Below are positions 28,370-47,309 of a DNA stretch of 64,000 nt, piece after piece. Below the pieces are notes generated by a model, which searched no databases, was not told where the DNA came from, and saw nothing but the letters and a program-made list of their open reading frames with translations. How positions within the stretch are numbered: position 1 is the stretch's first letter; each line of letters opens with the position of its first letter. A program made the translations under genes and the position numbers. The DNA comes from Rebecca billardiae RCC1528 (lineage: Eukaryota; Protista; Haptophyta): positions 1,736,001 through 1,800,000 of the forward strand of contig OZ251236.1 in assembly GCA_965240325.2 (NCBI GenBank), given 5' to 3'.

Positions 28370-31300
28370 CTAGCTCGGCCTCGGCAGCCGCAGCAGCTGC
28401 GCGTGCGCGGAGACGATGGCGTCCCACGAGAGCCGCGCGCGCGCGCGCTCGCGCGCGCACTCGGCGAGCGCGCGCCGCCGCTCTGCCGCGCCCGAGCCGG
28501 GCGGCGCGAGCAGCGGCGCGAGCTGCTCGGCGGGCGAGGGCATCGCGCCCGCGGCCGCGCGCGCCTCCGCCTCTGCCAGTGGCGCGTCGAGCAGCGCGCC
28601 GCAGCCGCCTCCGAGCAACTCGGCCGTGTGCGGGTCTGGCGTGGCGGCGACGGTCAGCCCTGCCGCCATCGCGCCGCCGACCGCCGCGGCCACGTCCGCG
28701 AGCGGCGCGTCCGCGTCCGCGCCGTCCGCCTCGTCGGCGTCGCCCTCGTCTGCGGCGCGCTCGAGCTCGGCGCCGCTGCGCGTGGGGTGCACCGCCGCGT
28801 GCCCATAGCCCGCGTCGACGCGGAGCGCGGAGGGAGCGGGCGCGCGGCCGCTGCCGTGGTGCGCCCAGTCGTGCGTGTGCGCGGCCTCGAGCACGGAGGG
28901 CGCGCTGGGCGCGGCGCCGGCCTGCACGAGCAGCGCGCGCGCCGAGAGTGCGCCCAGCGGCGCGACGAGGAGGTCCGCCGCTCGGAGCAGCGCGCCAAGC
29001 GACGCGGCGCCGCCGCCGCCCGCGCCCTCCTCCTCCTCCGCCGCCTCCGCCTCCGCGTCCGCGTCCGCCTCCTCCGCCCACGCGCCTCCGGCCGTGGCGG
29101 CGGGCAGCGCGACGAGCCGCAGCGCCGCGCCGGCCGCCGCGGCCGCGCCGAGCGCGCCCGCGAGCGCCGCGCCGCGCTCGCCCCCGCCGAGCGCGGGCGC
29201 GGCGCAGCGCAGCCACGCCGCGACCGTCGGCGCGGCCGCGGCGCGCGCCGCGCCGCCGCCGCCCGGCGCGGGCGGCGCGCACACGCGCGCGCGCCCGTCC
29301 GCGCCGCCGCCGACCGCCGCGCCGCCGACCGCCGCGATGACCAGGGCGGCGCGCGGCGCGAGCGGCGGCGCGGCGTGCGCGCGCGCGAGCGCCGCGAGCT
29401 GCGCGGGCGGCGCGGCGCGCGTGTCCGCGAGCAGCACGCACGGGCGCACGCCGCCGAGGCCGAGCGCGCGCAGCGTGCGCGCGCGCTCGGCGGGCGCGGC
29501 GCCGAGCGCGCCGGCGCAGCCGTCCGTCTCCGCGCCCGCGCCCGCGGCGGCGGCGCGCGCGCTCTGCTTCGGCCCTGGCGGCGCAGCTGGCGCGCGCTGC
29601 TGCGGCGCCGCGTACGGCACGGTCAGCACCGGCGGCAGCGGCGCCGAGCCGGCGGGCGCGGGCGCGTCCAGTCCGAGCGCCGCGCGCAGACTTGCGGCCG
29701 CGGCAGCGGAGGGCGCGACGTGCGCGTAGCACAGCCGGCCGAGCTGGCGCTCCGCCGCGCGCTCGGCGGCGGCGGCGGCGCGCGCGCGCGCGGGCGGCGC
29801 CGGGTGCCACACGCACAGCGCGGGCACGCGCAGCCGGCGCAGAAGGCACGCGGCCAGCGCGCCGCCGCCGCCGCCGTACGCGCCGCGCACGACGTGCAGC
29901 ACGACCGCGCCCGCGGTGCGCGAGGCGTAGTCAGCGAGCGCGTTGTAGTCGCCCGCGGAGCCGCGGCGCAGCGTGCGCACGCGCGGCGCGGGCGCGGCGG
30001 CGGGCGTCGCGGCGGCTTGCTTGCGCCCGCCGCGCCCGTCCGCGTCGGCGGCGCCCTCCACCGTGTCCGCCTCGCCCTGCAGCGACAGCGCCACCTCCAC
30101 GCGCACCGCGCCCGCAGAGCCGGCCGCGCCCGCCGCGCCGAGCGCGGCGCCCATGCGGTCGGCGAGCGCGAGCGCGTACGAGGCCGCGGCGCGCACGGCC
30201 GCGGAGCCGCCGCTCACGCGCGTGGCGGTGGGCGTGATCACGAGCACCGCCCGCGCACCGCCGTGCGCGGGCGGCTGCGCGCTCGGCGGCTGCGCGGGGC
30301 AGCGCTCCCCGTGCGCGAGCGCGTAGCACGCGCGCAGCACGCCGCTGCCCGGCACGCGCGCCAGCCCTGCGCAAGGCGCGGTGGGGGGCGGGGCGGGGCG
30401 GCGGCGGCGGCGGCGGCGGCACAGCAGCGCAGCGGCACGGCAGCAGCGGCAGCGGCGGTGGGTGCGGTGGGTGCGGCGCAGCGTTGGCGGTGGGTGCGGC
30501 GGCGCGCGCGCGGCGCGCGGCGCGGCGCGGCGCGGCGCGGCGCGGCGCGGCGCGGCGCGGCGCGGCGCGGCGCGGTGCGGCGCGGCGCGGCGCGGCGCGG
30601 CGCGGCGCGGCGCGGTGCGGTGCGCACCGAGCCAGTCGTCACGCACGCCCACGCCGCGCGGTGGCCGCCAGCGCGAGGTGTTGGCCGCGGAGGCGGCGGC
30701 GCGGCCGAGCGCGGCGGCGAGCGCGCGCGACGCCGTGTCGGGCGCCGCGGCCGCATCGGCCGCGCGGCGCGCGCGCGCGGCCGAGCCGTGCACCGCATAC
30801 CAGCACGCGCGCGCGCCCTCGTCCGCTGCGGCCGGCCCGAGGGCGCGCGCCTCCGCCGCACCCTCCGCCGCCGTTGCCGCCGGCGCCGGCGCCGGCTCCG
30901 CCGGTGCGGGCTGCGCGCCGAGCAGCGCGAGCAGCGCGGCGCCGAGCGCGGTGGCGTTGAGCACCTTGCGCGCGCCGTCCGCCGCGCTGTTCGCCAGCGC
31001 GCCGCCCGCGCGCTCGCGCGCCGCCGCCGCCGCCGCCCTGAAGGCGAGTGGGAGCGCCACGTCTGCCGCGCGGCCCGCCAGCTGGGCGAGGGCGGAGCAG
31101 TTGGGGCCGAGCAGCGCGACGCCCGCGCCCGCGGCCAGCGCCACGCCGTCCGCCTCCGCGGCGCTGAGCGCGCGCGTGTCGCAGTGCGGCAGCACGTGCG
31201 CGTGCGCGCCCACCGCCGCGCCCTCCGCGCCGCCCGCCACCGCCGAGTCCACCACACGCAGCCACGCGGGCGGCGCGGCGCGCGCGCACCCGCCGCCGCA

Positions 31301-31664
31301 CCCGCCGCCGCCGCCGCGCGCGAGCAGCGCGGCCGCCATCGCGCGCACCAGCTCCGCGTCCGCGCCCGGTGGCGCGATGAGCGCGAGCGAGGCGGTGCGG
31401 TGCGGCGCGGGCGCGGCGCCGCCGGCCGCGCGCCGCCGCCTGCGCGCCGTGTCGGCCGCCCCCGCCGCCGCGTTTGCATGCTCCACCGCGCGCAGCAGCA
31501 CTCGCAGCGCGCGCGCGTTGGCTGCGGGCAGCACTGCGCTCAGTATGAGGGGGGGCGGCGCGGCGCGCTCGGCGGCGGGCTCGGCGTCGGCGCCGCTGGC
31601 GTCGGCGTCGGCGCCGCCGTCCTGCTCGCCCGCCGCCGCGCCCGCCGCGTCGGCGCCCCCCTCC

Positions 31665-31699
<35 letters not shown>

Positions 31700-34600
31700 T
31701 CCGCCGCCGCCGCCGAGCAGCAGCGGCGCCGTGGCGCCGCCCGTGCCGAGCAGCGCGGCGCCGCCCGCGTCCACAGCGCCGACGGCCGCGACGCGCGCGC
31801 GCGGCAGCCCGGCCCTGGAGAGCGACAGCGCGTGCCACCTGCTGCCCAGCCACACCTCGTCCAGAGAGCCGAGCAGCGCGCCCAGCTGCGCGCTCAGCGA
31901 GCCCGCGTCCGCGGCGGCGGCGGCGGCGGCGGCTGACGTGTGCGGCGGCAGCAGCGGCGGCGCGCGCGCGAGCCAGCCGACCACGGCCCCCCACGCGTCG
32001 CAGCGGCTGAGGTCGGCGCCGATGGCGTGCGCGTCCGAGCCGTCCCACAGGGCGAGAGACGGCAGACCCGTGCCCTGCCCCACCGCGCCGCCCTGCGCGC
32101 GCGCGTGCGCGAGCGCGCGCGCGAGCGCGAGCGCGTCGTGCGCGGACGCGGGCGCGCCGCCGCCGAGGCCGCGCGCACACGCGCCCAGCAGGGCGCCCGG
32201 CTCGTCGTCCGCGTCGTCCGCGTCGTCGGCGTCGGCGTCGGCGTCGGCGGCGTCGGTGTGCGCCCGCCACGCGCGCGCAGACGGCGCCGCCTCCTCCGCC
32301 GCGCTCGGCGCACGCGCTGCGAGCGTAAGTGGAGTGGCGCGCCACACGGCGCCGAGCGCGCCGCCGCCGCCCGCGCGCGCGCGCTCGGCCGCGGCCGCGG
32401 CCACGGCCGCGGCGCGCGCGCGGCCGCGGAGCACGCCGCCGGCCGCGCCGCCGGCGCTGGCGAGCGGCACGTACCAGCGCACCGCGCCCACCTCCGCCTC
32501 CGCCTCCGCGCCGCCCGCGCCCGCCGCCGCCGCCGCCGCGCCCGCCGCCGCCTCGAGCTGCGCGCGCCACCGCGCAGAGAAGCGCGACACGGCGGCGGAC
32601 AGGGAGGGGGCGCGCGCGCCGCCGTGCTCGGCGCCGTCGGCTGCCGCGCCGCCCTCGTCCGACGTCGCTGCGCTGGCGAGGCCCGAGTCGGCCACGCCGT
32701 CCGCGCCGTCCGCGCCGGCGCCGCCCACGCCGCCGCGCCCGTCCGCGCCGCCCACGTGGCCCGCGTGCGCGGCGTGCGCCGCGGCGCGCGCGCTCGCCCG
32801 CGCGGCCGGTCGGAGCGCCACCGCGTGCGGCGCCAGCAGGACAGAGGTGCGCGTGCGCGCGGCGCGCGCCAGCGCGCGGTCCGCGACCGCGGCGGCGGCG
32901 CGCGCGCACGCGCCCGTGCGCGCGCGCAGCGCGAGGTCGGCGTCGGTGAGCGCGCCCGCGCCGCCACCCCACGGCCGCGGCGGCGCGGCCGCGGCCGCGC
33001 CGCCGGCGGCGCCGCCGCGTTGGCGCGCGTGGCCACAGCGCAGCCCTCCGCTCGGGTCGAGCGAGACGTCGAGGCCGCCGCAGCCGACGAAGACGGGGGC
33101 GTAGACGAGCGCCGCGCCGAGGTACACCGCCGAGACGTTCAGAAGCGGCGCGTGCTCGGGCGGCCCCTCGCCCACCGACGGCGGCGCCGCCCACAGCAGT
33201 GCTGCGCCGACGCCCGGCGCCGCGCCGCCGCCGGGCCGCGCGCCCGGCGCCGCGCCCGCGCCCGCCGGCGTTGCGCGCGCGGCGTGGAGGGGCGCGGCGG
33301 GCACGCCCCACGGCGCGCCGGCGCGGTGCGACGGCTCGTGCCGGTGCCCCCACGCCAGCCCCAGCTCGGCCTCCACCGGCATCACCGTGCCCGCCGCGCG
33401 CCACTCCGCGACGGCCGCGCCGCCGCCGCCGCCGCCCGGCCGCGCGGCCCAGCGCGCGCTCGGCGCGTGCGCAAAGCCGAGTGCGCCGTCCCACCCCGCG
33501 CCGTCGGCGTCGACGACGCGCGCGCCGATCGCGAGCGCGCCGTCCGCCGCGCGGCTGAGCAGCGCCGCCTGCAGCGCCGCCCCCGTGCTGGGCAGCAGCG
33601 CCACGCCCACGTCCACGACGAGCACCCAGCACCCGTCGCACCCGCCGCCGCCGGCCGCGCCGGCCGCGCCGCCGCCGCCGCCGCCGTCCGCGCCGCCGCC
33701 CGCGGCGTCGGCGGGCGCGTTGGCGGGCAGCGCGGCGTCCTGCAGCAGCGCGTTGAGCAGCGCGGCGCGCGGCGCGCGGCGCACGCACGCCCACCCGCCG
33801 CCGCCCTTCCCGCCGCCGCCCGCCGCCCGCTGCCTCCGCACCGCCACGCGCGCGCCGCGCGCGCGCAGCGCGCGGCCGAGCGCGCTGCCCGCGCCGAGCG
33901 GCGGCGCGGCGCCGGGCTCGACCTCGCCGACGAGGACGGCGGTGAGGTTGCACAGGCCGGAGAGGTGCGCGGAGGCGAGCACGCGCAGCGAGGCGCGCAG
34001 CGCGCCGCCGCCGGCGCGGCTCGCGAGCAGCACCGCCGCGACGCCCGCGCGCGCGCCGGCGCGCGCGGCGGCGGCGGCGGTGGCGGTGCGCGCGGCGCGC
34101 GCGATGCACGCGCGCGCGCCCGCCGCCGCCATTGCACTTGCAGCCGCCTCCATCGCCGCGCCCGCGGCGGAGGCGCGGCCCGCCGCGCCCGCCGCGTCGC
34201 TCGCGCTCAGCGCCGCGTCCGCCGCGTCCGCCGCCGCCGCGCCCGCCTCGCCCGCCTCCGCCGCGCGCGCCGCCACCTGCGCCGCCCACGACCAGAAGGG
34301 CGGCGGCGCGGGCCGCGCGATCGCGGCGGCGAGCCGCGCGCCGAGTGGCGCCGCGCCGCCGCTGCCGCGCGCGCCGTCGGCCGAGCCGACGGCGGCGGAG
34401 CGCGCGGCGCGCGGCAGCGCGTCCGGCCCGCGCCCGCCGCGCGGCGCCGCGTCCGCCGGCTGCGCCGCGCCCATCAGCGCGCGCACGTGCCCGGCGGTCC
34501 ACGCGCTGCCCGCGCCGAGCAGCGCGCCCGCGCACGCCGGCCACACAGACACGGCAGCGCGCGCGCCGCCGCGCCACGCGGCCTCGTCGTCGAGCTGCTC

Positions 34601-34919
34601 CGCGCCGGCGGGCTCGTCGTCCGCGCGCTCGAGCGCGAGCGCCGTCGGCAGCGTGACGGTCAGCGCCGCCGCCGCCGCCTCGGCGCGCGCGCACGCCGTC
34701 TCCCTCGCGCGCGGCCGCGCGCCGCCGCCCGCCGCGTGCGCCGCGCGCGGCAGCGGCAGCGCGGCGCCGTCGAGCGCGCCGCCCGCGCCCGCCTGCGCGG
34801 CGAGCGCGCCGTTGAGCCAGAGCGTGAGCCGGCCGCGGAGCAAGCCGCCGTCGAAGCTGAGCGCGACGTGGGTGGGCGCGTTCAGTGCCGAGCGCGCGCG
34901 CGCCCACAGCTCGACCCAC

Positions 34920-34955
<36 letters not shown>

Positions 34956-36250
34956 GCGCGCGCGCTCGCCGCGGCCGCGGCCGCGCACGCCGCGCGCGCG
35001 CCCAGCACGCCGCTCGCCGCGGCGGCGGCCGAGCAGTTGGCGAGGAAGAGCGACGCCGCGCCCGGCGGCAGCGGCGCGTGCGCGGCCTCGAGCGCCACGC
35101 CCGCCCCGAACCGCCGGCTCCGCCCGTCCCAGATGAGGCACAGCGCGAGCCCGGCGCACGGCGCGCGCGCGCCGCGCGCGCCGCCCTTGCGCGCGGCCAC
35201 GCCGAGCAGTAGTGTGCGCTGCTGCTGCGGCTGCGCGGACGGCGGCGCCTCCGCCTCCTCCTCGGCGCCGTCGTCGGCCGCGCCCGCCGCCGCCGCGCCC
35301 TCCGCGCCGGGCTCGCCGCCGCCGCTGGTCGCGCTGAGCAGCACCCACACCGCGGCGCTCAGCCGCTGCGCGCTGCCCGCGCCGCCGCCAGAGGCCGGCG
35401 GTGCGCCGCCGTCGTCGGCGCCGCCCTCGTCTGCGCGCTCGGAGCCGCCGAGGCCGTCGGGCGCGAGCGCGAGGTCCCAGAGCGGCTGCGGCGCGCCCTC
35501 CGGCGCGCGCGCGCGCGTCGCCGCGCCCACGTCGGCAGCAGCCGCATCATCCACGCCCCCGCCCCCCTCCGCCTGCGGCTGCGGCTGCGGCTGCGGCTGC
35601 GGCTGCGGCTGCGGCTTCGGCTGCGGCTGCGGCTGCGGCTGCGGCTGCGGCTGCGGCTGCGGCTGCGCGCTCAGCCAGCCGCCGAGCATGGCGCGCACAA
35701 CGGCACGGCCAGAGAGCGCGCGGCCCCAGCTGCGCGCGAGCGCGACGTGCGCGCGCGGGAGCGCCGGCGCCGCGTCGCACGCCAGCAGCGGCGGCGCCGG
35801 CGCCGCGCCGTCGGCCGGCGCGCCCGCGAGCGCCGCGCACAGCCGGCGCTCGGCCGCGCCGCCGTGCGGCTGCGTGCGCGCGCGCCGGCCGTGTGTGTAC
35901 GCTGCGAGGCTGCACGTGGCCGCGTCGAAGGAGAGCGCGATGTGGTCCCACCCGCCGCCGAAGGGCACCTCGCCGAAGCGCACGACCGCGCCGCCCTCGC
36001 CGCCGCCGCCCGCCTCCTCCTCCTCGCCGCCGCCGCTGCCGAGCGCGGCGCGCAGACTTGCCAACGCACCGCGCGCGCTGCGTGCGCGCGCGCCAGCCGC
36101 GGGCGCGTGCACGTGCAGCTCGTACGCGCCGCCCTCGCCCACGCGCACGTCGAAGCGCCCGTGCGCGTCCGCGAGCACGCACGCGCGCGCATAAGCCTCG
36201 CCGTCCAGCCGCGCCCACGCCTCGACCGCAAAGCCGCCATCGCCGTCGCC

Positions 36251-36283
<33 letters not shown>

Positions 36284-36646
36284 ACCGCCTGTGGCGGCCG
36301 CGCCGCCGCCGCCGCCGCCGTTGGGCTCGGGCGCGGGCTCGGCGTCGGCGCGGGGCGGCGCGAGCGGGAGCTCGGCGCCCAGCTCGTCCTCCGGCCGCGA
36401 CCATCCGAACGCCGCCGCGTCCGAGCCGTCCGCGCCCGCGGCGCGCTCGCGCGCCGCGAGCTGCTGCCGCAGCCGCGCGCGCGAGGCCGCGGCGGCGCGC
36501 CGGCGCTGCGTCGCGTGCGGCTGCGCGTGGAAGGCGCGCAGCGACGCGAGCAGCCACAGCGCGCTCGCGCAGAGCAGCACGAGCACGCCCGCGATGCGCC
36601 ACGGGCGCCGGGGCTGGTGGTGGCGCAGCGGCGCGCCCGGGGCCAT
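28370..36646 (-). CDS. Giant Ala/Gly-rich type II membrane protein with LamG/ConA-like modules and degenerate glycosyltransferase (GT2-like and GT4-like) segments; in-frame intron 30367-30627
   Basis: N-terminal TM anchor. LamG-like motifs FAVEAW...WDHIALSFD and THVALSFDG..LTLWLNG. GT4-like motifs LDEVWLGSRW..SLSRAGLP and ADLLVAP...AMAAGLTVAAT...LSWDAIV. Domain calls are by eye. Confidence 0.6.
30506..30622. repeat. (CGCGG)n pentanucleotide microsatellite inside an intron
   Basis: About 20 tandem copies directly visible just inside the GTGCGC donor at 30627 (minus strand). Confidence 0.9.
35572..35666. repeat. (CAGCCG)n coding hexamer repeat encoding a (QP)n linker
   Basis: Tandem GGCTGC on the + strand; translates as QPQPQP in the minus-strand ORF. 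Confidence 0.9.
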
Positions 36647-37116
36647 CGTGTCGTCAAATGCCGGCAAGCTGAAGGCGACTGGCGCCCTGTGCGGCTGTGC
36701 CCGCTCCCCCCCTCGGCCCTCGGCCCTCGGCCCTCCCCGCCCGTTCGTTGACCCGCCAGCCCTTGGGCCAGCCCTGCCCACCCACGAACAACTACTCACT
36801 AGGACGACGACGAGCGCCTGCGCTACATCGGACGAGGGTTCTGCCCAGCGCGCGGCTGACGCTGGGCGGAGTCGCCGTGGCGGCGCCCCGTGTGGCGCTG
36901 GCACTCGGGCTCAGTGACAGGGCGGCCCGCAGCACAGCATGACAGTTGGCACATGACCGCGGCGCCGGCCGCTGCATGCGCAGTCAGCAAAATAAATAAG
37001 GCGCCGCGCGCTCCGCCCTTGGCCGCACCCTCCGCCCGCGCGGGCGTGGCAGCCCGCGCCTCGCGCCGCGCGCGCGCTCCACCCACCAGCGCAGCCGCGC
37101 GCCCTGCGCTCCCCGC

Positions 37117-39251
37117 TCAGCCGGGCGGGCCCCGCAGCGGCGCGACAAGGCGGCGCGCGCACACGCCGAGGGCGTCTGCGAGCTGCGCGCGCGCGCGCTC
37201 CGCGTGCCAGCGCGCGTAGAGCTGGCTCACGCCCGCGCGCACGGGCGCGGCGCGCGCGCGCGTGCGCCCCGCGTGCAGCCAGGGGTGCTCGCGCAGCTCG
37301 GCGGCGGACGGCCGCTCCTCCGCGCGGTGCGCGAGCGCGGCGCGCACGAACGCGCGCGCGTCTGCAGAGTCCGGCTGCGGCGCGCGCGCTCCGGGCGGGT
37401 GTCCGCTGAGCAACAGCTGCACGAGCGCGCCCACCTCCCACACGGCCGCGCGCTCGACCGCGCCCGCCGCCGAGAGCGCGCCGCCGCCGCCGCCGCCGGC
37501 CGCGTGCGCGGGCGAGCGCGCGCGGCGCGCAGGCCTGTGCTCCGGAGGGTCGAGTGCTGCGTCCCACACGCACGCGCCGCCGCGCACCGAGCGCGCCGCG
37601 GGGCGCTGCAGGCCGAGCGCGCTGAGCGCGGGCCAGATGTCCTGCGCGGCCGGCGAAGCGCCCGGCGCGTCGTGGCCCCCGCCGCCGCCGCCGCCCCCGA
37701 GCTCCGCCCCGCCGTGCGGCGCGCGCGCCAGCAGCGAGGCGGCGTGCGCAGAGAAGCAGCCCGCGTGACCGGGCGCGCCGTCGAGCGAGCGCGAGAGCTG
37801 CGCGCGCACGTAGGCGAGGGCGCCCACCGCGTCGAGCAGCGCGGCCGCCACGCGACAGACGTCAGCCTCGCTGTACCCGCCGCCGCCGCCGCCGTCAGCG
37901 CCGCCGCCAGCGCCGCGGGCGTGCGCGCCGTGCGGCCGCGCGGTGTGCGCGGCCGCGTGCGCGAACGCGTCGAGCAGCGGCAGCGGCGCGCGCGAGGGCG
38001 GCTCGAGCAGCAGCGCTAGCCACGCGCCGCGCCCGTCCGCAGCGGAGTGCGCACCGCCGCGCGGTGGCGCGGGCGCGTACGAGTACGAGTGCGCCACGGC
38101 CCAGTCGACGCACGGCAGCTGCGCGCGCGAGCCCGCCGCGCCGGGCGCGCACAGCGCCGCCGCCCAGCGGCGCAGCGCGGCCTGCGCGGGGCCGGGCGGC
38201 GGGAGCGGCACGATGGCGCACCAGAGCGCGCGCGCACCGCCGCCGCCCGCGCCCGCCGCCGCGGCCGCGGCCGAGCGGTGCGCGCGCCACCGCTCGCCCA
38301 GCGCCACCCGCCCGGCGTCCGCCTCCGCCGCGCCCCTCAGCAGCGCGCCGTCGAAGAGGCGCGCCGGCCACGGCTCGAGCGCGGACGCGCCGCCCACGCC
38401 CGAGCCCGCGGACAGCAGGGCGGCGAGCACGTACTTGCCGCCGCGCGCGGACTCGGCCGCCGCCTCGAGCACGCCGCTCTCGGCCAGGGGTGGCGCGCCC
38501 GGCCCGAGCGCGGCCCAGCCGCCCTCCGAGCCTCCGCCCGCGCCGCCGCCCGCCGCGCCGCGCAGCGCGCCCGCCGACGCGGCCGCGTCCGCGGGCGCGC
38601 GCGCGCCCAGCACGCCCAACACGTCACGCAGGGCGGCGCCCGCGCTGCCGGGCGGCGAGCGCGCGGCCGCGGGGAGCGGAGAGCCGCCGCGCGCCGTGCT
38701 GCCGCCGAGCGAGCGCTCCGAGCGCGCGCGCGGGCTCAGCCGCCGGCGCGGCGACGGCGAGAGCGAGCGCGCGCGCGGCGGCGCGCCGCGCGCCGCCGAG
38801 CGGCCGCGCGGCCGCGCGCGCGGCGAGCCCCAGCCAGCGCGCGCGGCCGAGGGCGGCGCGGCGGCGTCGTCGCGCGGCGCCAGCGCGGCGGGGTGCGCGC
38901 CCGTCGCCGAGGCGTGCAGCAGCAGCTGCACCGCCGGCCCGGCGCTCAGCGCCTGCACCGCCGCCCGCTGCGCGCCCATCTCCGCCAGCCGCGCGCCCAG
39001 CGCGCCGTACGCGGCCGCGAGCGCGGGCTGCGAGTCTCCCGCCGCCCAGCCCGCGCCGTCGTCGGGCGCCACGGCCAGGAGCTGAGCCCAGTGCGCGTCC
39101 AGCGTGCAGCGGAGGAGCTCGAGCGCGCGCCGCTCGCGCGCCGTCCGCCGCTCGATGGCGCGCAGCGCCGCGAGCGCCCTCTCCGCCATGTCTGCGCGCG
39201 GGTCGTCGTCAAGCTCGCTGCCGCTGCCGCTGCCGCTGCCGCTGCCGCTGC

Positions 39252-39331
<80 letters not shown>

Positions 39332-41340
39332 GCCGAGCCGGGTGAGGGGCGGCCACCCTCGTCGTCGTCGTCGTCGTCATCAGAGGCCGAGCCGCGCCCG
39401 GCGCGCCCGCGCGCACGCCGCGCCCGCGCGCCGCGCGCCGGGCTCGCGAGCGCGGGCAGCTCGGGCCCTGAGCGTGCGAGCGCGCGCAGCCGTGCACGCA
39501 CGCTGTCGAGGGTGGCGAGGTCGCGCGCGCCCGCCGCGACCTCGGCGGCGGCGAGCTTGTCGCCGAGGCGCTCGAGCGCGCGCGTCTGCCGCAGCGCGAG
39601 CGCGCGCCAGTCCACCGCCGCCTTCTGCTGCCGCCGCGTCGCCGTGCGGATCTTCATCGCGCGCGCGCCGAACGCCAGCGACGCGGCCGCCTCGGCCGCG
39701 TGCTCCCGGCCCGGCCCGAGTGTGACGACCAGCGCGGTGCGCGAGGCGGCGCCGAGGCCGAGGGCGGGCTGGAGCAGCTGCGTGAGCGCCGAGTCGCGGA
39801 AGTTGGCGTGCGCCGCGCCGTCCGCGAGCGCCTGGCACAGGTTGCCCAGCGCGAGCAGCGAGAGGTTCGTCGCCACCGCCTCGCTCGCCCGCTCCCCCTC
39901 CGCTCCGCTCTTGCCCAGCCGCTCCGAGCCCGCCAGGTCAAAGAAGGCGAGGGAGGAGCCCTCGAGGGCGGCGGCGTGCAGCGCGGCGGCGCGGCGGGAG
40001 GCCTCGCCGCCGAGCGCGCGCGCGGTGCGCGCGAGGATGTCCGCGTCCGAGTCCGCCGCCGGCCCCTCCGCCGGCCGCAGCCGCAGCCACACCGCCATGT
40101 GCGAGCGCGAGCTGTCTTCGTTCATGCGCGTGGCCGCGCGCGCGCGCGCGCCGCTCGCCTGCGCGAGCAGCGCGTGCGCGTGCGCGGCTGAGCGCACCTC
40201 GTGCTCGGCGAGGCCGTGGACGAAGAAGCGGCCGTCGCGGTCCTCGCGCACCTCGCACGCGCTCGGCGCGCCCCCGTCCCTCGGCAGCAGGTCGTGCACC
40301 TCCTCGCGGTACAGCTGCAGCGCGCTCAGCCACACCACAAGGCCGCCGCCGCCGCCGCCGCCGCGCGCGGCCGAGCCGCCGCCGCCGCCGCCGCCGGGCG
40401 CGATCGAGACGACGCGGCCGCGCAGAGAGGGCGAGGACGGGCGGCGCGCGAGCGCGGGCGAGGAGGGCTCGCGCGCGAGCGGCGGCGACCACGCCCGCGC
40501 CAGCCCCGCCGACGACGGCCGCCGCGCCGACGGCGAGGACGGGCGGCGCGCGCCGAGCGCGGACGGCGACGAGGGCCGGCGCACGTGCGGCGAAGAGGGC
40601 CGCCGCGCGCCGCCGGCGGCGCCGGCGGCGGCGCCGCCGGGAGCGCCGCCGCCGTGGAGCAGCTCGAAGAGGCGGTCGATGGCGCGCGGCAGCAGCCCGC
40701 GCTCCTCGCTCACGCTCAGCTCGAGCGCCGCGGCGGTGGTCGCGTCCGCGGCCACGTCGGCGGCCGACGCCGCGCCGCCGCCCTCGCCGCCCGCTCGCGC
40801 GCGGCCGAGCACGGGCGGCGTGGTGCCCAGCGTGTACGTCTTGCCCGTGCCCGTCTGCCCGTACGCCAGGATCGTCGCGTTCGTCCGCGACAGCACCGCG
40901 TCCACCGCGGGCACGCCCACCGCCTCGAACAAGTCGAGCTGGTGCGCGCGCGGGCCGTACACGCGGTCGTACCGCCACGTGCGCGTGGAGGCGGAGGGGC
41001 CAACGAGGGGCGGCGGGGGCGAGGGCGCGGCGGGGGCGGGGGGGGGCGGCGTGGACGGGGACGCGCCGCCCTCCGCGCCGCGCGGCTCGGACGACGGCCG
41101 CGCCCAGCGCGCGTGCGGCGCGCGCGCGGCCGCGCGCGGCGCCGCGCGCGCGCGCGTCGGCTCGGTGAGCGACTGCGCCTCGGCGGTGAGCGTGACCTCG
41201 CGCGCGCGCTCGTCGACGTCGACGACCGGGCGTGCGCGCGCCGACTCGCCCTGCGCCTCGAGCGCCGGGCGCAGCCGCACCACCACGCGCACGCGCTCCG
41301 TCGCGCTGCCCTCGGCGGCGAAGAGGCTGGCCGGCGGCAT
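37117..41340 (-). CDS. Kinesin motor protein with coiled coil and a C-terminal degenerate protein-kinase-like lobe
   Basis: RVVVRLRP, YDRVY, AYGQTGTGKTYT, NEDSSRSH, FDLAGSE, NLSLLALG, FRDSALTQLLQ. The C-terminus has VWEVGALVQLLLSGHPP...ARAFVRAAL...EERPSAAELREHPWL. Confidence 0.88.
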
Positions 41341-41565
41341 CGCTGCTGCAGGCGCGTGATGAATGGCCCTTCACGTTTGGCGCCGGTTTGGCCCCAAGGC
41401 CCAAATTGTATTCGGGAGTAGTAACAGTCGCGCGCGCGTGCAACGGGTGGACAAGGGTACCCGCACTTACGCGGCCGCCGGCCAATCGGCGCCCGCGCGT
41501 GGGACTTGGGGGCGCGGGCGCAAGGTTTGCCGCCGCGCAAGTCGACGCGCACGCACGCGCGCACG

Positions 41566-44329
41566 ATGCCGGGCGAGGCGCCGCCGGGCCAGCGCCTGCG
41601 CGAGCGTCGCGCGACGATCCCGCGCATGCCCGAGGCCGCGCTCCCGCTCGTCCCCGCGGCGCGCCCCGCGTACGTGTACCAGCTCTGCCCCGGGCTCCAA
41701 GAAATCGCGGGCGTCGGCTCGGTGCCCGAGCACGAGCTCATCCGCGCGCTCGAGCGCTGCGGCGCGATCGTGCGCGTCGCGGCGGGCGCGGCGGAGGAGG
41801 AGGCGGCAGCGCCGGCGCTGCCCGAGCCCGAGCGCCAGCCCTCCAAGCCGCGCCCCGCCGGCCAGCTCTGGACGCTCGCCAAGCGCGCGGCAAAGGGTGC
41901 GCCCGCGTCCGACCCGTGGGAGGTGCACCGCCTGTGGGAGCGGCCGACCGAGCTGTGCGTGCGGCACGACTACGACCCGCACACGCGCACGTGGCACAGC
42001 ATGGAGACGCTCGTCAAGATGGAGGACCAGCCCTTCGCGCACGGCGCGATGCGCGAGTGCTTCCGCCTCAAGAAGATGTCGCAGTTCTCGCCCGCCTTCT
42101 TCTTCCGCATGGACTGGCGGCACTGCGCCAACTACGTCGCCAAGCGGTACAAGAGCGCGGAGGCGGGGCGGCAGATGTACCTGGACGACGTGATGATGCA
42201 GATGGAGGCGAAGCGCTGGTCCGCGCGGTACAACGCCCTCGGCCCGCCCAAGCCCGTCGACTTCCTCCAGGCGTTCGCACTCGAGTTCCCGCACCGCGGC
42301 GGCGCGGTGTACGCGGCCGAGCGGCTGATCGAGGGCGAGTACACCAAGTACAACGGCAACTCGGGGTACGTGGCGGGCGGCGCGGAGCACTACCGCTCGA
42401 CGCCGCAGGCGTTCTCGCTCTTCACCTTCCATGCCTCCGCCGGCCGGTGCATGGTCGTCGACATCCAGGGCGTGGGCGACGTGTTCACAGACCCGCAGGT
42501 AAACGCTCAAGCGTACTACTCATGACGAGCAATGAGCAGGGTCCGCTGACGGGCTCCCCCGCCCCCCGACTGCGCGCAGGTGCACACGCACGACGGCGCC
42601 GGCTACGGCGACGGCAACCTGGGCGTGCACGGCATGGCGCTCTTCTTTGTGAACCACGTGTACGACGAGCTGTGCGAGGGGCTCGGGCTGCCGTGCTTCG
42701 CGCTCGCGCCCGCCGAGCTCGAGCGCGCCAAGGCCGCGCGCGACGCCGACGCCGCCTCGGGCCGCACCGACTCGGCGGGCGGCGCCGACTCGCTGCCGGC
42801 CGCGGTCGCGTCGCTCTCGCTGCTCGCGACGCGCGCGCGCGCGCGCGCGCCGCTGCCGCCCGCGCCGGGGCTCGCGGTGCCCGTCGAGGTGGTGCGCGCG
42901 GCGTCGGACCTGGGGCACGAGGGCTCGGTCAGCGCGCGCGTCGGCCGGCTGCTCGACGAGCTCGTCGCCGTGCAGGTGCGGCGCGCGCGCACGCGCGCGC
43001 GAGCGCGGCCGGCCGCGCCGCGCCGACGGTGCCGCGCGCCGCGCGCCGCGCGCCGCGGCGCATCAGGCGCAGAACGCGTCGCGGCGCATGAGCATGGCGC
43101 CCCTGCCCGAGCTCGGCAGCGCGGCGCACCCGACGGCGTGGCAGACCGTGCACAGCGCCGACGTGGACGCGCTGCCCTGGCGCGAGATCGGGTCTGCCAT
43201 CGAGGCCTACGAGTGGGGCGTGCTGCACGGCGGCGCGGGCGCTGGAGCGAGGGGCGGCGATGTGGGGGCGGAGGGCGCGGCGGAGGGCGCGGACGGCGCG
43301 CCCGCCGCCGCCGAGCACGCGCCGCCCGGCTCGGCCGCCCCCGCGGCCGCGGCCGCCCCCGCGGCCGCGCAGCCGCGGCTGCTGCTCGGCGGGCGGCAGG
43401 ACTCGGACTCGGTGGCCTCGGCTGCGGCGCGCGGCGGCGTGGAGGAGGAGGACGACGAGGGCGACGCGACCGCGCGCGCGATGCGGCTCCGCGCGACGCT
43501 CGGGCAGGTGCGTGCGCGCGCACCCGCGCGCGCACCCGCGGCGCTGGCGCCCCGCGTGGCCGCGCGCGCTGGCGCGGCCACACGGCTGACGGCAGCGCCG
43601 CCCGCCGCGCCGCCCGCCCCTCTGCGCCGCGCCCACGCGCGCACGCCTTCGCCGCCGCCGCCTTCGCCTTCGCCTTGGGCGCAGGTGCACCTCTCGCTGG
43701 CCAAGCTCAACTACGCGTGCGCGCTGCCCGGGCAGGACGGCGCGCGCTGCCCCGACGTGCCGTGCGCGCTCTTCCACCTCGTGCACTCGGCGGCGCACGG
43801 CTGCGTGGGCGCGACGCGCGGGCTGCGCGCGCTGTGCCAGGGCACGCGCACCGAGCTGCTGCCCGACGTGCACTTCTCGCGAGAGTGCCCCGAGCGCGCG
43901 CACGTGCTCGCGCGCCTCGCCGCGTGGCAGGGCGACCGCGAGTCCACGGTGGAGGTGGTCGCGGAGACGGCGGCGCAGGCGGCGGAGGCGGAGGCGGGCG
44001 GGGACGGCGCGGCCGCGGCGCGCGCGAGAGAGCAGGCGGCGGCGTGGCTGCGCGCCGCGCTCGAGGCAGAGGGCGAGGAGTGGGACGACGAGCGCGACGC
44101 GGCGGCCGAGCTGAGCGGCGCGGCCACGCACCAGCTGCGCGCGCGCCTCGCTGAGCTGCTCGAGGCGGGCGCGCAGTGGGCCGACGCGGCCGAGCAGTAC
44201 GAGGCAGCGAGCGAGGCGGCGATGGCGCGCGCGAAGGGCAAGCTCGCGATGAAGCTGTCCGAGAAGGCCGAGGCGGCGTGGGCCAAGGCTGAGGAGGAGG
44301 AAGACGGCGGCGGCGCGGAAGCCGAGTGA
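41566..44329 (+). CDS. EEF2K: Eukaryotic elongation factor 2 kinase (alpha-kinase). Introns 42499-42579, 42976-43066 (or -43072), 43508-43684
   Basis: PFAHGAMRECFR, YVAKRY, DVMMQMEAK, VVDIQGVGDVFTDPQ|VHT, YGDGNLG, and an eEF2K-type C-terminus AAMARAKGKLAMKLSEKAEAAW. The start codon is uncertain. Confidence 0.9.
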
Positions 44330-44499
44330 CGGGTATGAGTAATGTGGGTAGGTAGATTCATATTCATATGCGTATCTAGCCATCGATAGAATCCCAACCG
44401 CGTTCACATATTTCTTCATCATTCTGATGAAGAAATATGTGAACACGGTTGGGAGTAAAATAATCTCGCCTGCCTGAGCTGTGTGCGTCTCTTATAATA

Positions 44500-45575
44500 G
44501 AGGCCACTTCACCGAAATCCAGGTTGGGGAGGATCTCCGCTGCACTGGTGGGGAGGATGTCATCCTCCCCGCTCGCCACGGCTGGGGAGGATGTCCGCCG
44601 CGCTGTCCGGTCTTTCGCCGCTGACAAAACTTTCGAAAACGAAAGTCGCGCTATGGCGGACCCGGTGTTCCCGCCCGGCGGCGAAAGGGGCGCGGGGCCG
44701 GTGGCTCGCGATCCGAAGGGCAGTAGCTCGCGACCTCGCTTGGGCGGTGGCAGCGGCGCTGTGGCACGGCGTGTACCATCCGCGCGGCTGTGCGCGATCG
44801 CGCGGTCCCGTTCGTCGCCACGCCGCGCGCGACCGTTCACGCCACAGTCTTTCCGCACTGGCATGCACCCGTTGCAAGCGCATGACGGCGGAGAGCTCAG
44901 AGAGCCCGTCACGCGCGTGACGACCGTGTGGGATGGGTTGTGCCGATATGAAGGCTGCCCTTCGTAGGCTTTCTGATGAGCCCATCCAACGTTCAGACCA
45001 TTCCTAACTGCTGAAAGATGAGTCATCGCCTGCCACACGGCCATGGAGTTGTGGACAGTACAGCAGCCGTCCATGATCCGCATGCCCGCCTCATGGGCCG
45101 GCGCGTGCCTCCCTGAACATGAAGACAAGCTGTACAACCCATCCCACACGGTCGTCACGCGCGTGACGGGCTCTCTGAGCTCTCCGCCGTCATGCGCTTG
45201 CAACGGGTGCATGCCAGTGCGGAAAGACTGTGGCGTGAACGGTCGCGCGCGGCGTGGCGACGAACGGGACCGCGCGATCGCGCACAGCCGCGCGGATGGT
45301 ACACGCTGTGCCACAGCGCCGCTGCCACCGCCCAAGCGAGGTCGCGTGCTACTGCCCTTCGGATCGCGAGCCACCGGCCCCGCGCCCCTTTCGCCGCCGG
45401 GCGGGAACACCGGGTCCGCCATAGCGCGACTTTCGTTTTCGAAAGTTTTGTCAGCGGCGAAAGACCGGACAGCGCGGCGGACATCCTCCCCAGCCGTGGC
45501 GAGCGGGGAGGATGACATCCTCCCCACCAGTGCAGCGGAGATCCTCCCCAACCTGGATTTCGGTGAAGTGGCCTC
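44500..45575. mobile_element. Non-autonomous foldback DNA transposon. 442-bp inverted arms (44500-44941 and 45134-45575), 192-bp spacer, candidate TSD TAATA (or TA)
   Basis: The arms are reverse complements with 2 mismatches seen. Termini are GAGGCC...GGCCTC. TAATA lies at 44495-44499 and 45576-45580. GGGGAGGAT is repeated subterminally. Confidence 0.9.
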
Positions 45576-46244
45576 TAATATTCTTACAGTAGTAAACTGC
45601 ACGAATCACACGCGCGGTACTAGCCATAAGGGAGATTCTCAAACGGTATGGTATGGGGGTTTCAAATGAAGTTCTCAACATACTCAATGGTTAGATGGTA
45701 GTATTGGTTCGTGTGTTCAACCGGTAGAATCTCTGTTCTCAACGAATCTTTCATCACATTCGATCGGGTGATCAGACCGAGATGTCCCAGTGATGAAAGC
45801 CGTTGATTATTTCATTCACGATTCTGATTGGTACGTGCGGGTTTCAACTGGGGAAACTGTATGGCGACGTATTACGCACCATATACTGATGGATTATTAA
45901 TGGGCGGGTTGGTCGGTTGGGTTGATGATTGATGATGATGAATTGATGATTGATGAGCAACTCACTTCGCCCGCGGCCGCTCAGTAATCATATGGGAGTG
46001 AGAATCCCCTGGTTTATCGCGACGAACTCCGAAACCCCGAGGGCAAGCCAAATATTGAAAGCATCTCCGGGGCCCGGCAAAGGATCGCACACAATCATTC
46101 CTGGGACTCCGGCGCGACGACGGGGTACTCGCCCCCAAAACAACCCGCCAGTGCTCTCGCTCGGGGCGGCCCAGCAGCCGCACTCGCCCCGCTCCACACA
46201 GCGCTTGGCGTCTGCCCGCGCGTCGCCCAGAGGCCAAGAGCATC

Positions 46245-47309
46245 ATGGTCAAACCTGATCGGATGGAATGGACGCCCGAGCTGCACGCCCAGTTCGTGGC
46301 CGCCGTGAACAGGCTCGGCGGCCTCGGCCGCGCGATGCCGGCGGCGATCCTCGAGGAGATGGCGCTGCCCGGGCTGACGCGGCACCAGGTCAAGAGCCAT
46401 CTCCAGAAGTACAGCGGCGAAGGGAAGTCGTCGAGTAATGCCACTGCGCACCACTCGGCCAACCCCACCACCGCCGCCGGGCCTCATCAGGGCCTCGCGT
46501 ACATGCCCGCTCCCGCCGCCGCACCGTCCGGCCCGAGCTACACCGCTCACGTCGTGGCGCCGATGCAGCAGCAGTACGCGGGCTGCGTGCAGGCTGTCCC
46601 GTGTGTGGGTCCCTCTGCCCCGTGGGCGCAGGCGCAGCCCATCTGCTCCGCCGCACCGCCGCCACAGCCGAGCCCAGGCCAGCTGCAGCCGTACGCGCCG
46701 ATGGAGCAACAGCCGTACCAGCAGCAGCGGCAGCCTGTGGCGCAGATGCAGCAGCAGCCGTCGTACCAGCAGCAGCCGCCGCCGCAGCAGCAGCACCAGC
46801 AGCCGCCGCAGCAGTCGTACCAGCAGCAGTCGTACCAGCAGCAGTCGTACCAGCCGCAGCCGCAGCCGCAGCTGCCGCCGCAGCAGCCGTACCAGCAGCA
46901 GCCGCCGCCGCAGCACGCGCCGCCGCAGCAGTACAGCCAGGGCTCGTACTGCGTGGTGCCGCCAGCACAGCCCCTTCAGCCGCAGGCGCAGCAGCACGCC
47001 AGCAGCAGCTGCGCACTGAGCAGCGGCGGCCGCCTCCGGCGGCTCATCCCAGCGCACGCCTCGTGCACTGGGCACGAGCCCGCCGGCGGCATCACCCTCA
47101 AGAACGGCACTGAGGCCGACGAAGACCTGTGGTGCGAGCTGCGCCGCCTCCAGCACGAGCTCGCGTCCGCACTCGACGAGCACATCACGAAGCGGAAGCG
47201 GGTGCCGTGCGCGGATGGGCACGCGCTCAAGCAGGCGCGCAGCCTGCGCGGCAGCGTCACGGCGTTGGTGCACAAATACGAGCAGCTGCAGGCGCTGCTG
47301 GACAGCTGA
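46245..47309 (+). CDS. MYB-related SHAQKYF/GARP-class transcription factor with Gln/Pro-rich region and C-terminal coiled coil
   Basis: [18 protein letters not shown]...[25 protein letters not shown]. Confidence 0.92.

Follow-up and report, generated by a model that had tools for sequence, protein, structure and literature searches.

A recently mobile, non-coding foldback element in the haptophyte Rebecca billardiae combines GAG...CTC ends with 5-bp target-site duplications

The stretch of DNA analyzed here, which we call the window, comprises 64,000 nucleotides of contig OZ251236.1 of Rebecca billardiae RCC1528 and has a G+C content of ~70%. It carries a foldback element, whose features are collected in Table 1, followed by a MYB-like gene of the SHLQKY type (46245-47309) and preceded by a neighbor (41425-42522) that, judged by eye, may encode an alpha-kinase-like protein. 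Because the MYB-like gene starts ~670 bp downstream of the element, this 1-kb hairpin occupies the likely promoter region of that gene. A small, perfect-looking palindrome (44392-44454; 30-nt arms, 3-nt loop) lies 45 bp to the left of the element, and Rfam returned for it only sub-threshold, miRNA-precursor-like hairpin matches. Farther upstream, a 12-kb stretch (29000-41000) reaches a G+C content of 78-87%, extreme even for this genome, and is overlapped in part by a 1,417-aa ORF on the minus strand (37120-41370). An exact look-up of the products of both neighboring genes, made in search of other assemblies and an empty site, gave no match, and no empty allele was seen.

Table 1. Features of the window copy and its immediate flanks (positions of the window)
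Feature	Coordinates	Strand	Basis or remark
Whole element, family F1, non-autonomous foldback, non-coding	44500..45575	.	1,076 bp
Left TAATA, 5-bp target-site duplication	44495..44499	.	5-bp duplications in 25 of 26 F1 copies
Right TAATA, 5-bp target-site duplication	45576..45580	.	Sequence
Left arm, 442 nt	44500..44941	+	Inverted-repeat search and arm alignment
Right arm, 442 nt, two mismatches versus left arm	45134..45575	-	Arm alignment, copy comparison
Unique center (loop), 192 nt, 70% identity to F3 center	44942..45133	.	Inverted-repeat search, F1/F3 comparison
Left conserved 23-bp terminus GAGNNCACTNNANCGAAAWCNNG, common to all sister families	44500..44522	+	End alignment
Right conserved 23-bp terminus	45553..45575	-	End alignment
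Left subterminal GGGGAGGAT array	44526..44592	+	Motif count
Left GGGGAGGAT sites, direct	44526-44534, 44550-44558, 44584-44592
Left GGGGAGGAT site, inverted	44562-44570
Right subterminal GGGGAGGAT array, mirror of left array	45483..45549	-	Motif count
48-bp dispersed repeat unit, left part	44462..44494	+	Resumes 45581-45603; element inserted inside

An inverted-repeat search of the window returned a single pair (44494-44941 and 45134-45581) of 448 nt, 99% complementary and separated by 192 nt; the six surplus bases on each side of this pair are A/T flank and lie outside the element. Alignment of the 442-nt arms revealed two substitutions and zero gaps. The initial annotation, made from the letters of the window, had described 442-bp arms with only two mismatches, GAG termini, TAATA on both sides, and a motif array of four copies, three direct and one inverted, in the ~95 bp next to each end, and all of these features were recovered. 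The ends read GAGGCC...GGCCTC, and the same GAG...CTC ends recur in all copies; TAATA abuts the element at both junctions (Table 1); and all eight GGGGAGGAT copies of the 64-kb window lie inside the element, three direct and one inverted no farther than 95 bp from each terminus, compared with 0.13 expected by chance. The second and third copies of the left array together form a palindrome with a 10-bp stem.

The same annotation had taken the insertion to be very recent and its duplication to be 5 bp long, a view at odds with a genome that holds no other copies or only copies with TA or 9-bp duplications. Searching the 72-Mb genome (41 contigs) yielded at least 27 full-length copies of the family to which the window element belongs, designated F1, 22 of them at 97-100% identity. 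Read at fixed ends, 25 of 26 F1 copies are bordered by a perfect 5-bp direct repeat, the sequence of which varies from copy to copy, and in the 26th, six filler bases at the right junction separate the 5-bp repeat from the element. When F1 is pooled with two sister families, F2 and F3, and with a composite of 7.6 kb (see below), perfect 5-bp duplications number 30. The window copy alone is compatible with a direct repeat of length 2 or 5; this ambiguity is settled at 5 because the other copies show 5 bp. A TA-only reading of the Tc1/mariner kind was rejected, given that the flanking 5-mers vary from one copy to another and that most of them have no TA at the junction, and a 9-bp reading was likewise excluded. 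The window copy matches three others (on contigs C16, C11, and C10) at every base, and 18 copies differ from it by at most 10 substitutions, in keeping with the very recent insertion that had been proposed. An F1 sub-lineage with a 15-bp deletion comprises four identical members, and older F1 copies have diverged by 2-8%. F1 has been active more than once, and very recently. The window element is a genuine transposon, non-coding and recently mobile: its ends are fixed, it occurs as a discrete unit at 27 or more unrelated sites, each with a 5-bp duplication of its own, and its sequence is nearly the same from site to site.

The 30 perfectly duplicated sites define a weakly palindromic target consensus, c/NGWCN/g (slashes mark the borders of the duplication), with C at position -1 in 20 of the 30, G at duplication position 2 in 19, A or T at position 3 in 20, C or T at position 4 in 25, and G at position +1 in 15. 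This pattern is what a symmetric dimer cutting with a 5-bp stagger would leave. The window copy is inserted inside a dispersed repeat unit of ~48 bp, of which 12 copies were found in ~300 kb of loci centered on GAG-type elements (in the window at 44462-44499 and 45581-45603, and also in L005, L020, L026, L030, L035, L045, and L050). The unit is sometimes tandem and often preceded by a conserved stretch of ~40 bp, and its copies vary by small insertions: +2 (TA) twice, +5 twice (the window copy), and ~+10 once. Transposons may insert into and excise from this unit preferentially; alternatively, the unit may be one end of a different small, abundant element. Once the element and one copy of the duplication are subtracted, the unit in the window differs from the unit consensus by two 5-bp insertions, the first of which is a TTATT duplication with two junction bases swapped for their complements; the TAATA target spans this junction. 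Excision scars with complemented junction bases are left by hairpin-forming enzymes (hAT, Transib/RAG). The pre-insertion site appears to resemble such a scar, an observation to which we give little weight, as it is a single case and alternative parses are equal in mismatches.

To compare the arms, we followed individual positions across copies. The arms of the window copy mismatch at element positions 229/848 and 269/808, and sister copies have perfect pairs there, resolved one way or the other. In copies L025 and L026, 75 arm positions differ from the window copy, including 35-36 complementary pairs, and only 1-3 mismatches separate each copy's own arms. Because the arm differences fall as complementary pairs, with few mismatches within each copy, the arms of one copy evolve in concert. 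Such concerted change needs either repair templated by the opposite arm or that one arm be rebuilt from its partner from time to time, presumably through hairpin mismatch repair, gene conversion, or snap-back synthesis.

F1 is one of several related families. A genome-wide search with the 20-nt end core GAGNNCACTNNNNCGAAAWC, allowing up to three mismatches, gave 173 matches, versus 0 for the reversed control. The matches represent at least five kinds of GAG-end foldback, 0.13-4 kb long and ~95 elements in all: F1 (~1.08 kb), F2 (~2.96 kb, with arms of ~875 nt), F3 (~1.04 kb), variants with ends starting GAGTCC or GAGACC (2.4-4.0 kb), the L047 family (2.25 kb, with a degenerate left end), and a miniature member of 131 bp (L010:2756-2884; C10:1507862-1507990). 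The miniature sits 180 bp from an F1 copy, and its flanking 5-mers no longer match. The 7.6-kb unit of L045 is a non-coding composite of arms with its own 5-bp duplication. Three F2 copies within C11:1119643-1148553 have starts spaced exactly 12,950 bp apart, suggesting that a 12.95-kb segment, already bearing the element, was duplicated threefold in tandem.

Alignment of the ends of 13 representatives reveals 13 invariant positions in the 23-bp end consensus, which contains CACT at positions 6-9 followed by an A-rich block. The geometry of the subterminal array is likewise conserved across the sister families: in five of them, sites of 9-10 bp are laid out direct-direct-inverted-direct at ~27, 51, 62, and 85 nt. 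Each family has its own site word (GGGGAGGAT, GTCCAGGGC, GTCCTGGGC, GGCCAGGGC, and GGCTAGGTGT), and within one family the word is altered in all sites simultaneously. F1 and F3 are 86% identical in the arm interior and 70% in the center, and only 56% in the subterminal 100 nt; the two are mosaics of each other. We read the fixed architecture as a set of putative protein-binding sites whose specificity has been switched several times, and the same end and geometry, with sites changing in concert, point to sequence-specific recognition. Alternatively, the arrays could be conserved for the structure of the DNA instead of for the binding of a protein; however, a structural role would not require the first, unpaired (non-palindromic) site to co-vary, and that site does co-vary, which argues against a purely structural role of the small palindromes.

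The initial annotation had also called for identification of the autonomous partner, and none with matching ends was found among all paired ends plus the unpaired ends read, a set outside which 15 further unpaired ends lie. No ORF with the strong third-position G+C signature of this genome is present inside any member examined, nor is there a coding element between paired GAG-type ends, the pairs spanning 0.13-4.0 kb plus the non-coding 7.6-kb composite. The unpaired ends in L034-L037, L041, L046-L048, and L050 proved to be truncated copies or other foldbacks and contained no coding partner. Truncated unpaired ends adjoin host genes (kinase, ankyrin, PHO4, and histidine kinase). One of them adjoins an unrelated 4.6-kb foldback (L050:4537-9148; C8:3341194-3345805) with arms of ~615 nt, the subterminal region of which repeats a ~16-nt word, GTACCGTTGGTGGCAC.

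Genome scans with domain models were equally negative for a linked transposase. The MULE domain (PF10551) has two matches, neither within 400 kb of a GAG-type end; the hAT dimerisation domain (PF05699) has one weak, interrupted match, 72 kb from the nearest GAG-type end; and Chromo has 19 matches, none near GAG-type ends. A group of ~19 near-identical rve matches without RVT_1 nearby was first read as an RT-less integrase transposon, a reading that was dropped because one copy read has RVT_2 (1e-51) beside the integrase. These matches belong to a Ty1/Copia family (L052, C8:1711000-1714300, and ~18 other sites) of ~19 near-identical copies with frames of ~1,950 aa, which has evidently been active recently. 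A weak Chromo match in L051 was considered as a possible chromodomain-bearing transposon and rejected; it falls in an 815-aa ORF (L051:3745-6189; C11:2609744-2612188) with a partial chromodomain and a motif that looks OTU-protease-like by eye, 3 kb upstream of an RT match that lies in a 2,751-aa frame, and the ORF may be part of an unusual retroelement. A metagenome scan gave two bacterial matches, attributable to chance, and 13 single matches from a viral-contig scan were taken as chance as well. Because neither an autonomous copy nor a transposase was found, we can only infer mobilization in trans by a DDE enzyme.

Based on these results, the stretch 44500-45575 is very probably a copy of a class II (cut-and-paste) DNA transposon of the foldback type, non-autonomous and moved in trans. 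It has the fixed inverted ends, fixed-length duplication, and dispersed non-coding copies by which non-autonomous class II TIR elements are recognized. We propose that a transposase supplied in trans would bind the 23-bp terminus and the four subterminal 9-10-bp sites of each end, pair the two ends, and join them to a target cut with a 5-bp stagger; the weak palindrome of the target would suit a symmetric enzyme dimer, and repair of the stagger would generate the 5-bp duplication. The similarity of the 442-nt arms would be maintained by repair or regeneration of one arm on the template of the other (intramolecular gene conversion or snap-back synthesis), and the sister families might be recognized either by several variants of the enzyme or by a single, tolerant one.

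Transposon superfamilies are defined by their transposases, and protein-less elements are assigned to a superfamily by duplication length and end sequence. Mutator/Foldback elements typically have G-rich GAG starts and long inverted repeats and give rise to foldback derivatives, and the duplications of eukaryotic MULEs are usually 8-10 bp; CACTA elements have subterminal direct and inverted sites, and hAT elements use short subterminal repeats. As Bao and colleagues are said to have reported in 2009, all three Sola groups make 4-bp duplications. The 5-bp duplication of the window family matches the length found in Transib and hAT5 and departs from those usual for Mutator (8-10 bp), P (7-8 bp), Sola (4 bp), and Tc1/mariner (TA), while its GAG...CTC end departs from those of Transib, hAT (YARNG), Ginger (TGTNR), and P (CA...TG). 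Among the described groups compared (Transib, hAT5, Ginger2/TDD, Mutator, and Sola), none pairs a 5-bp duplication with GAG...CTC ends; the earlier remark that such ends, with 5-bp duplications and long arms, fit none cleanly holds for all five. The accompanying suggestion of an undescribed family stands as far as the unusual signature goes; novelty at the level of the superfamily is not established, because it is the transposase that defines a superfamily, and the searches recovered none. What makes the signature unusual is the combination with GAG ends and not the 5 bp alone, since groups with 5-bp duplications have already been described.

A RAG1-fold enzyme, that is, a member of the CACTA-Mirage-Chapaev-Transib assemblage, is a conceivable though unlikely mover: CACT at end positions 6-9 with its A-rich block, subterminal direct and inverted sites that recall CACTA elements, and the single pre-insertion site resembling the hairpin-type scar of a 5-bp-duplicating element are all consistent with it, but no such gene lies between GAG-type ends. 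Transib is moreover the classic 5-bp group, and some of its families favor palindromic 7-mers with outer c...g (PMC1131882); on the other hand, the window family has neither the CA...TG ends of this clade, whose duplications span 2-5 bp (PMC12730594), nor the CACAATG heptamer of the heptamer/nonamer-type Transib ends (PMC1131882). A divergent hAT-like transposase of the hAT5 type is more doubtful; the sole genome match to the dimerisation domain is weak, broken, and 72 kb off the nearest GAG-type end. Short subterminal repeats are a hAT habit, and the possible hairpin-type scar at the insertion site would be compatible with hAT chemistry. Families of hAT with 5-bp duplications do exist in the hAT5 group (PMC12730594), but their superfamily has YARNG ends, with G at position 3 of a CA or TA start (PMC1131882), where the window element starts GAG.

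That the element is instead Mutator-like or Foldback and moved by a MULE transposase of this genome we consider rather improbable. The MULE genes that the genome does have are represented by only two domain matches, neither less than 400 kb from a GAG-type end, and no pair of GAG-type ends has the 15-18-kb spacing required for a giant MULE. The GAG start, the long inverted repeats, and the foldback form all recall Mutator/Foldback elements, but the usual MULE duplication of 8-10 bp is not what these copies show. Tm1 exemplifies a foldback element with long inverted repeats (PMC3169594), and duplications across 4-10 bp have been reported for MuDR/IS256 (PMC10045372). Very unlikely, in our judgment, is a retroviral-type integrase (Ginger2/TDD-like or Polinton-like): Ginger2 TDD-4/5 elements do duplicate 5 bp, but with TGTNR ends (PMC2836005), and integrases generally make 4-6 bp duplications (PMC10045372), but the only abundant rve family in this genome (~19 copies) is the Ty1/Copia family with RVT_2 (1e-51) beside its integrase. 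Lastly, the GAG/5-bp foldbacks could be the sole visible trace of an undescribed cut-and-paste lineage, in which the enzyme would recognize a 23-bp end plus a four-site array of fixed geometry, the sequence of these sites having switched at least five times, and would be encoded outside such ends, by an immobile or domesticated (stationary) source gene or as a protein too divergent for family models. We hold this reading tentatively and think it unlikely: the combination of a 5-bp duplication with GAG...CTC ends matches no described group compared, and ~95 elements in at least five families include no coding member, yet some copies are identical; against this, the absence of a partner rests on limited searches (ends with up to three mismatches, 15 unpaired ends lying outside).

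Whichever enzyme is involved, the non-autonomous foldback transposon is a known kind of element, and what is new is the unusual combination of end and duplication, together with a 23-bp consensus for the ends, a site geometry that is conserved while the motifs change in concert, figures for the concerted evolution of the arms, the mosaic relation of F1 and F3, and the exclusion of the Copia integrase. The family is populous and currently active, in a very GC-rich alga of a poorly studied group, and its two assignment signatures disagree with every described group compared. The family offers a test case for how binding-site arrays switch sequence while their geometry stays, and for how long inverted arms stay identical; 1-kb perfect hairpins in promoters are also potential sources of double-stranded RNA and of rearrangements. 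A claim to a new lineage hinges on finding the transposase.

Among known systems, the foldback elements (Drosophila FB, Galileo, Tetris, and nematode Tm1) resemble the window family in their very long, near-identical arms and short center, their repetitive subterminal regions, the predominance of non-coding copies, and arms that remain alike as families diverge. FB and Tm1, which belong to Mutator, make 9-bp duplications and Galileo, which belongs to P, makes duplications of 7-8 bp, whereas the window family is strictly 5 bp and non-coding. Transib shares the 5-bp duplication and, in some families, the palindromic 7-mer target with outer c...g, as does RAG-mediated transposition; unlike the window family, with its GAG start, CAC from position 6, and 442-nt arms, it has a CACAATG heptamer and an A-rich nonamer within ~38 bp and short repeats. 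hAT5 elements likewise share the 5-bp duplication and have short subterminal repeats as likely binding sites, but they start with CA or TA, and no usable hAT gene is linked to the window family. The Dictyostelium members of Ginger2 (TDD-4 and TDD-5) share the 5-bp duplication and differ in their TGTNR ends, 50-180-bp repeats, and preference for AT-rich RTATAY targets. Sola, named in the initial annotation for its GAG-type ends, differs by its 4-bp duplications. Mutator-like elements also have starts of the GAG type and long terminal inverted repeats, and they include many non-autonomous derivatives whose interiors are unrelated, but they differ in their usual duplication of 8-10 bp. Although membership in any of these groups is not supported, in its working mode the window family comes closest to the foldback derivatives of Mutator and P and to the CACTA and hAT elements with subterminal arrays.
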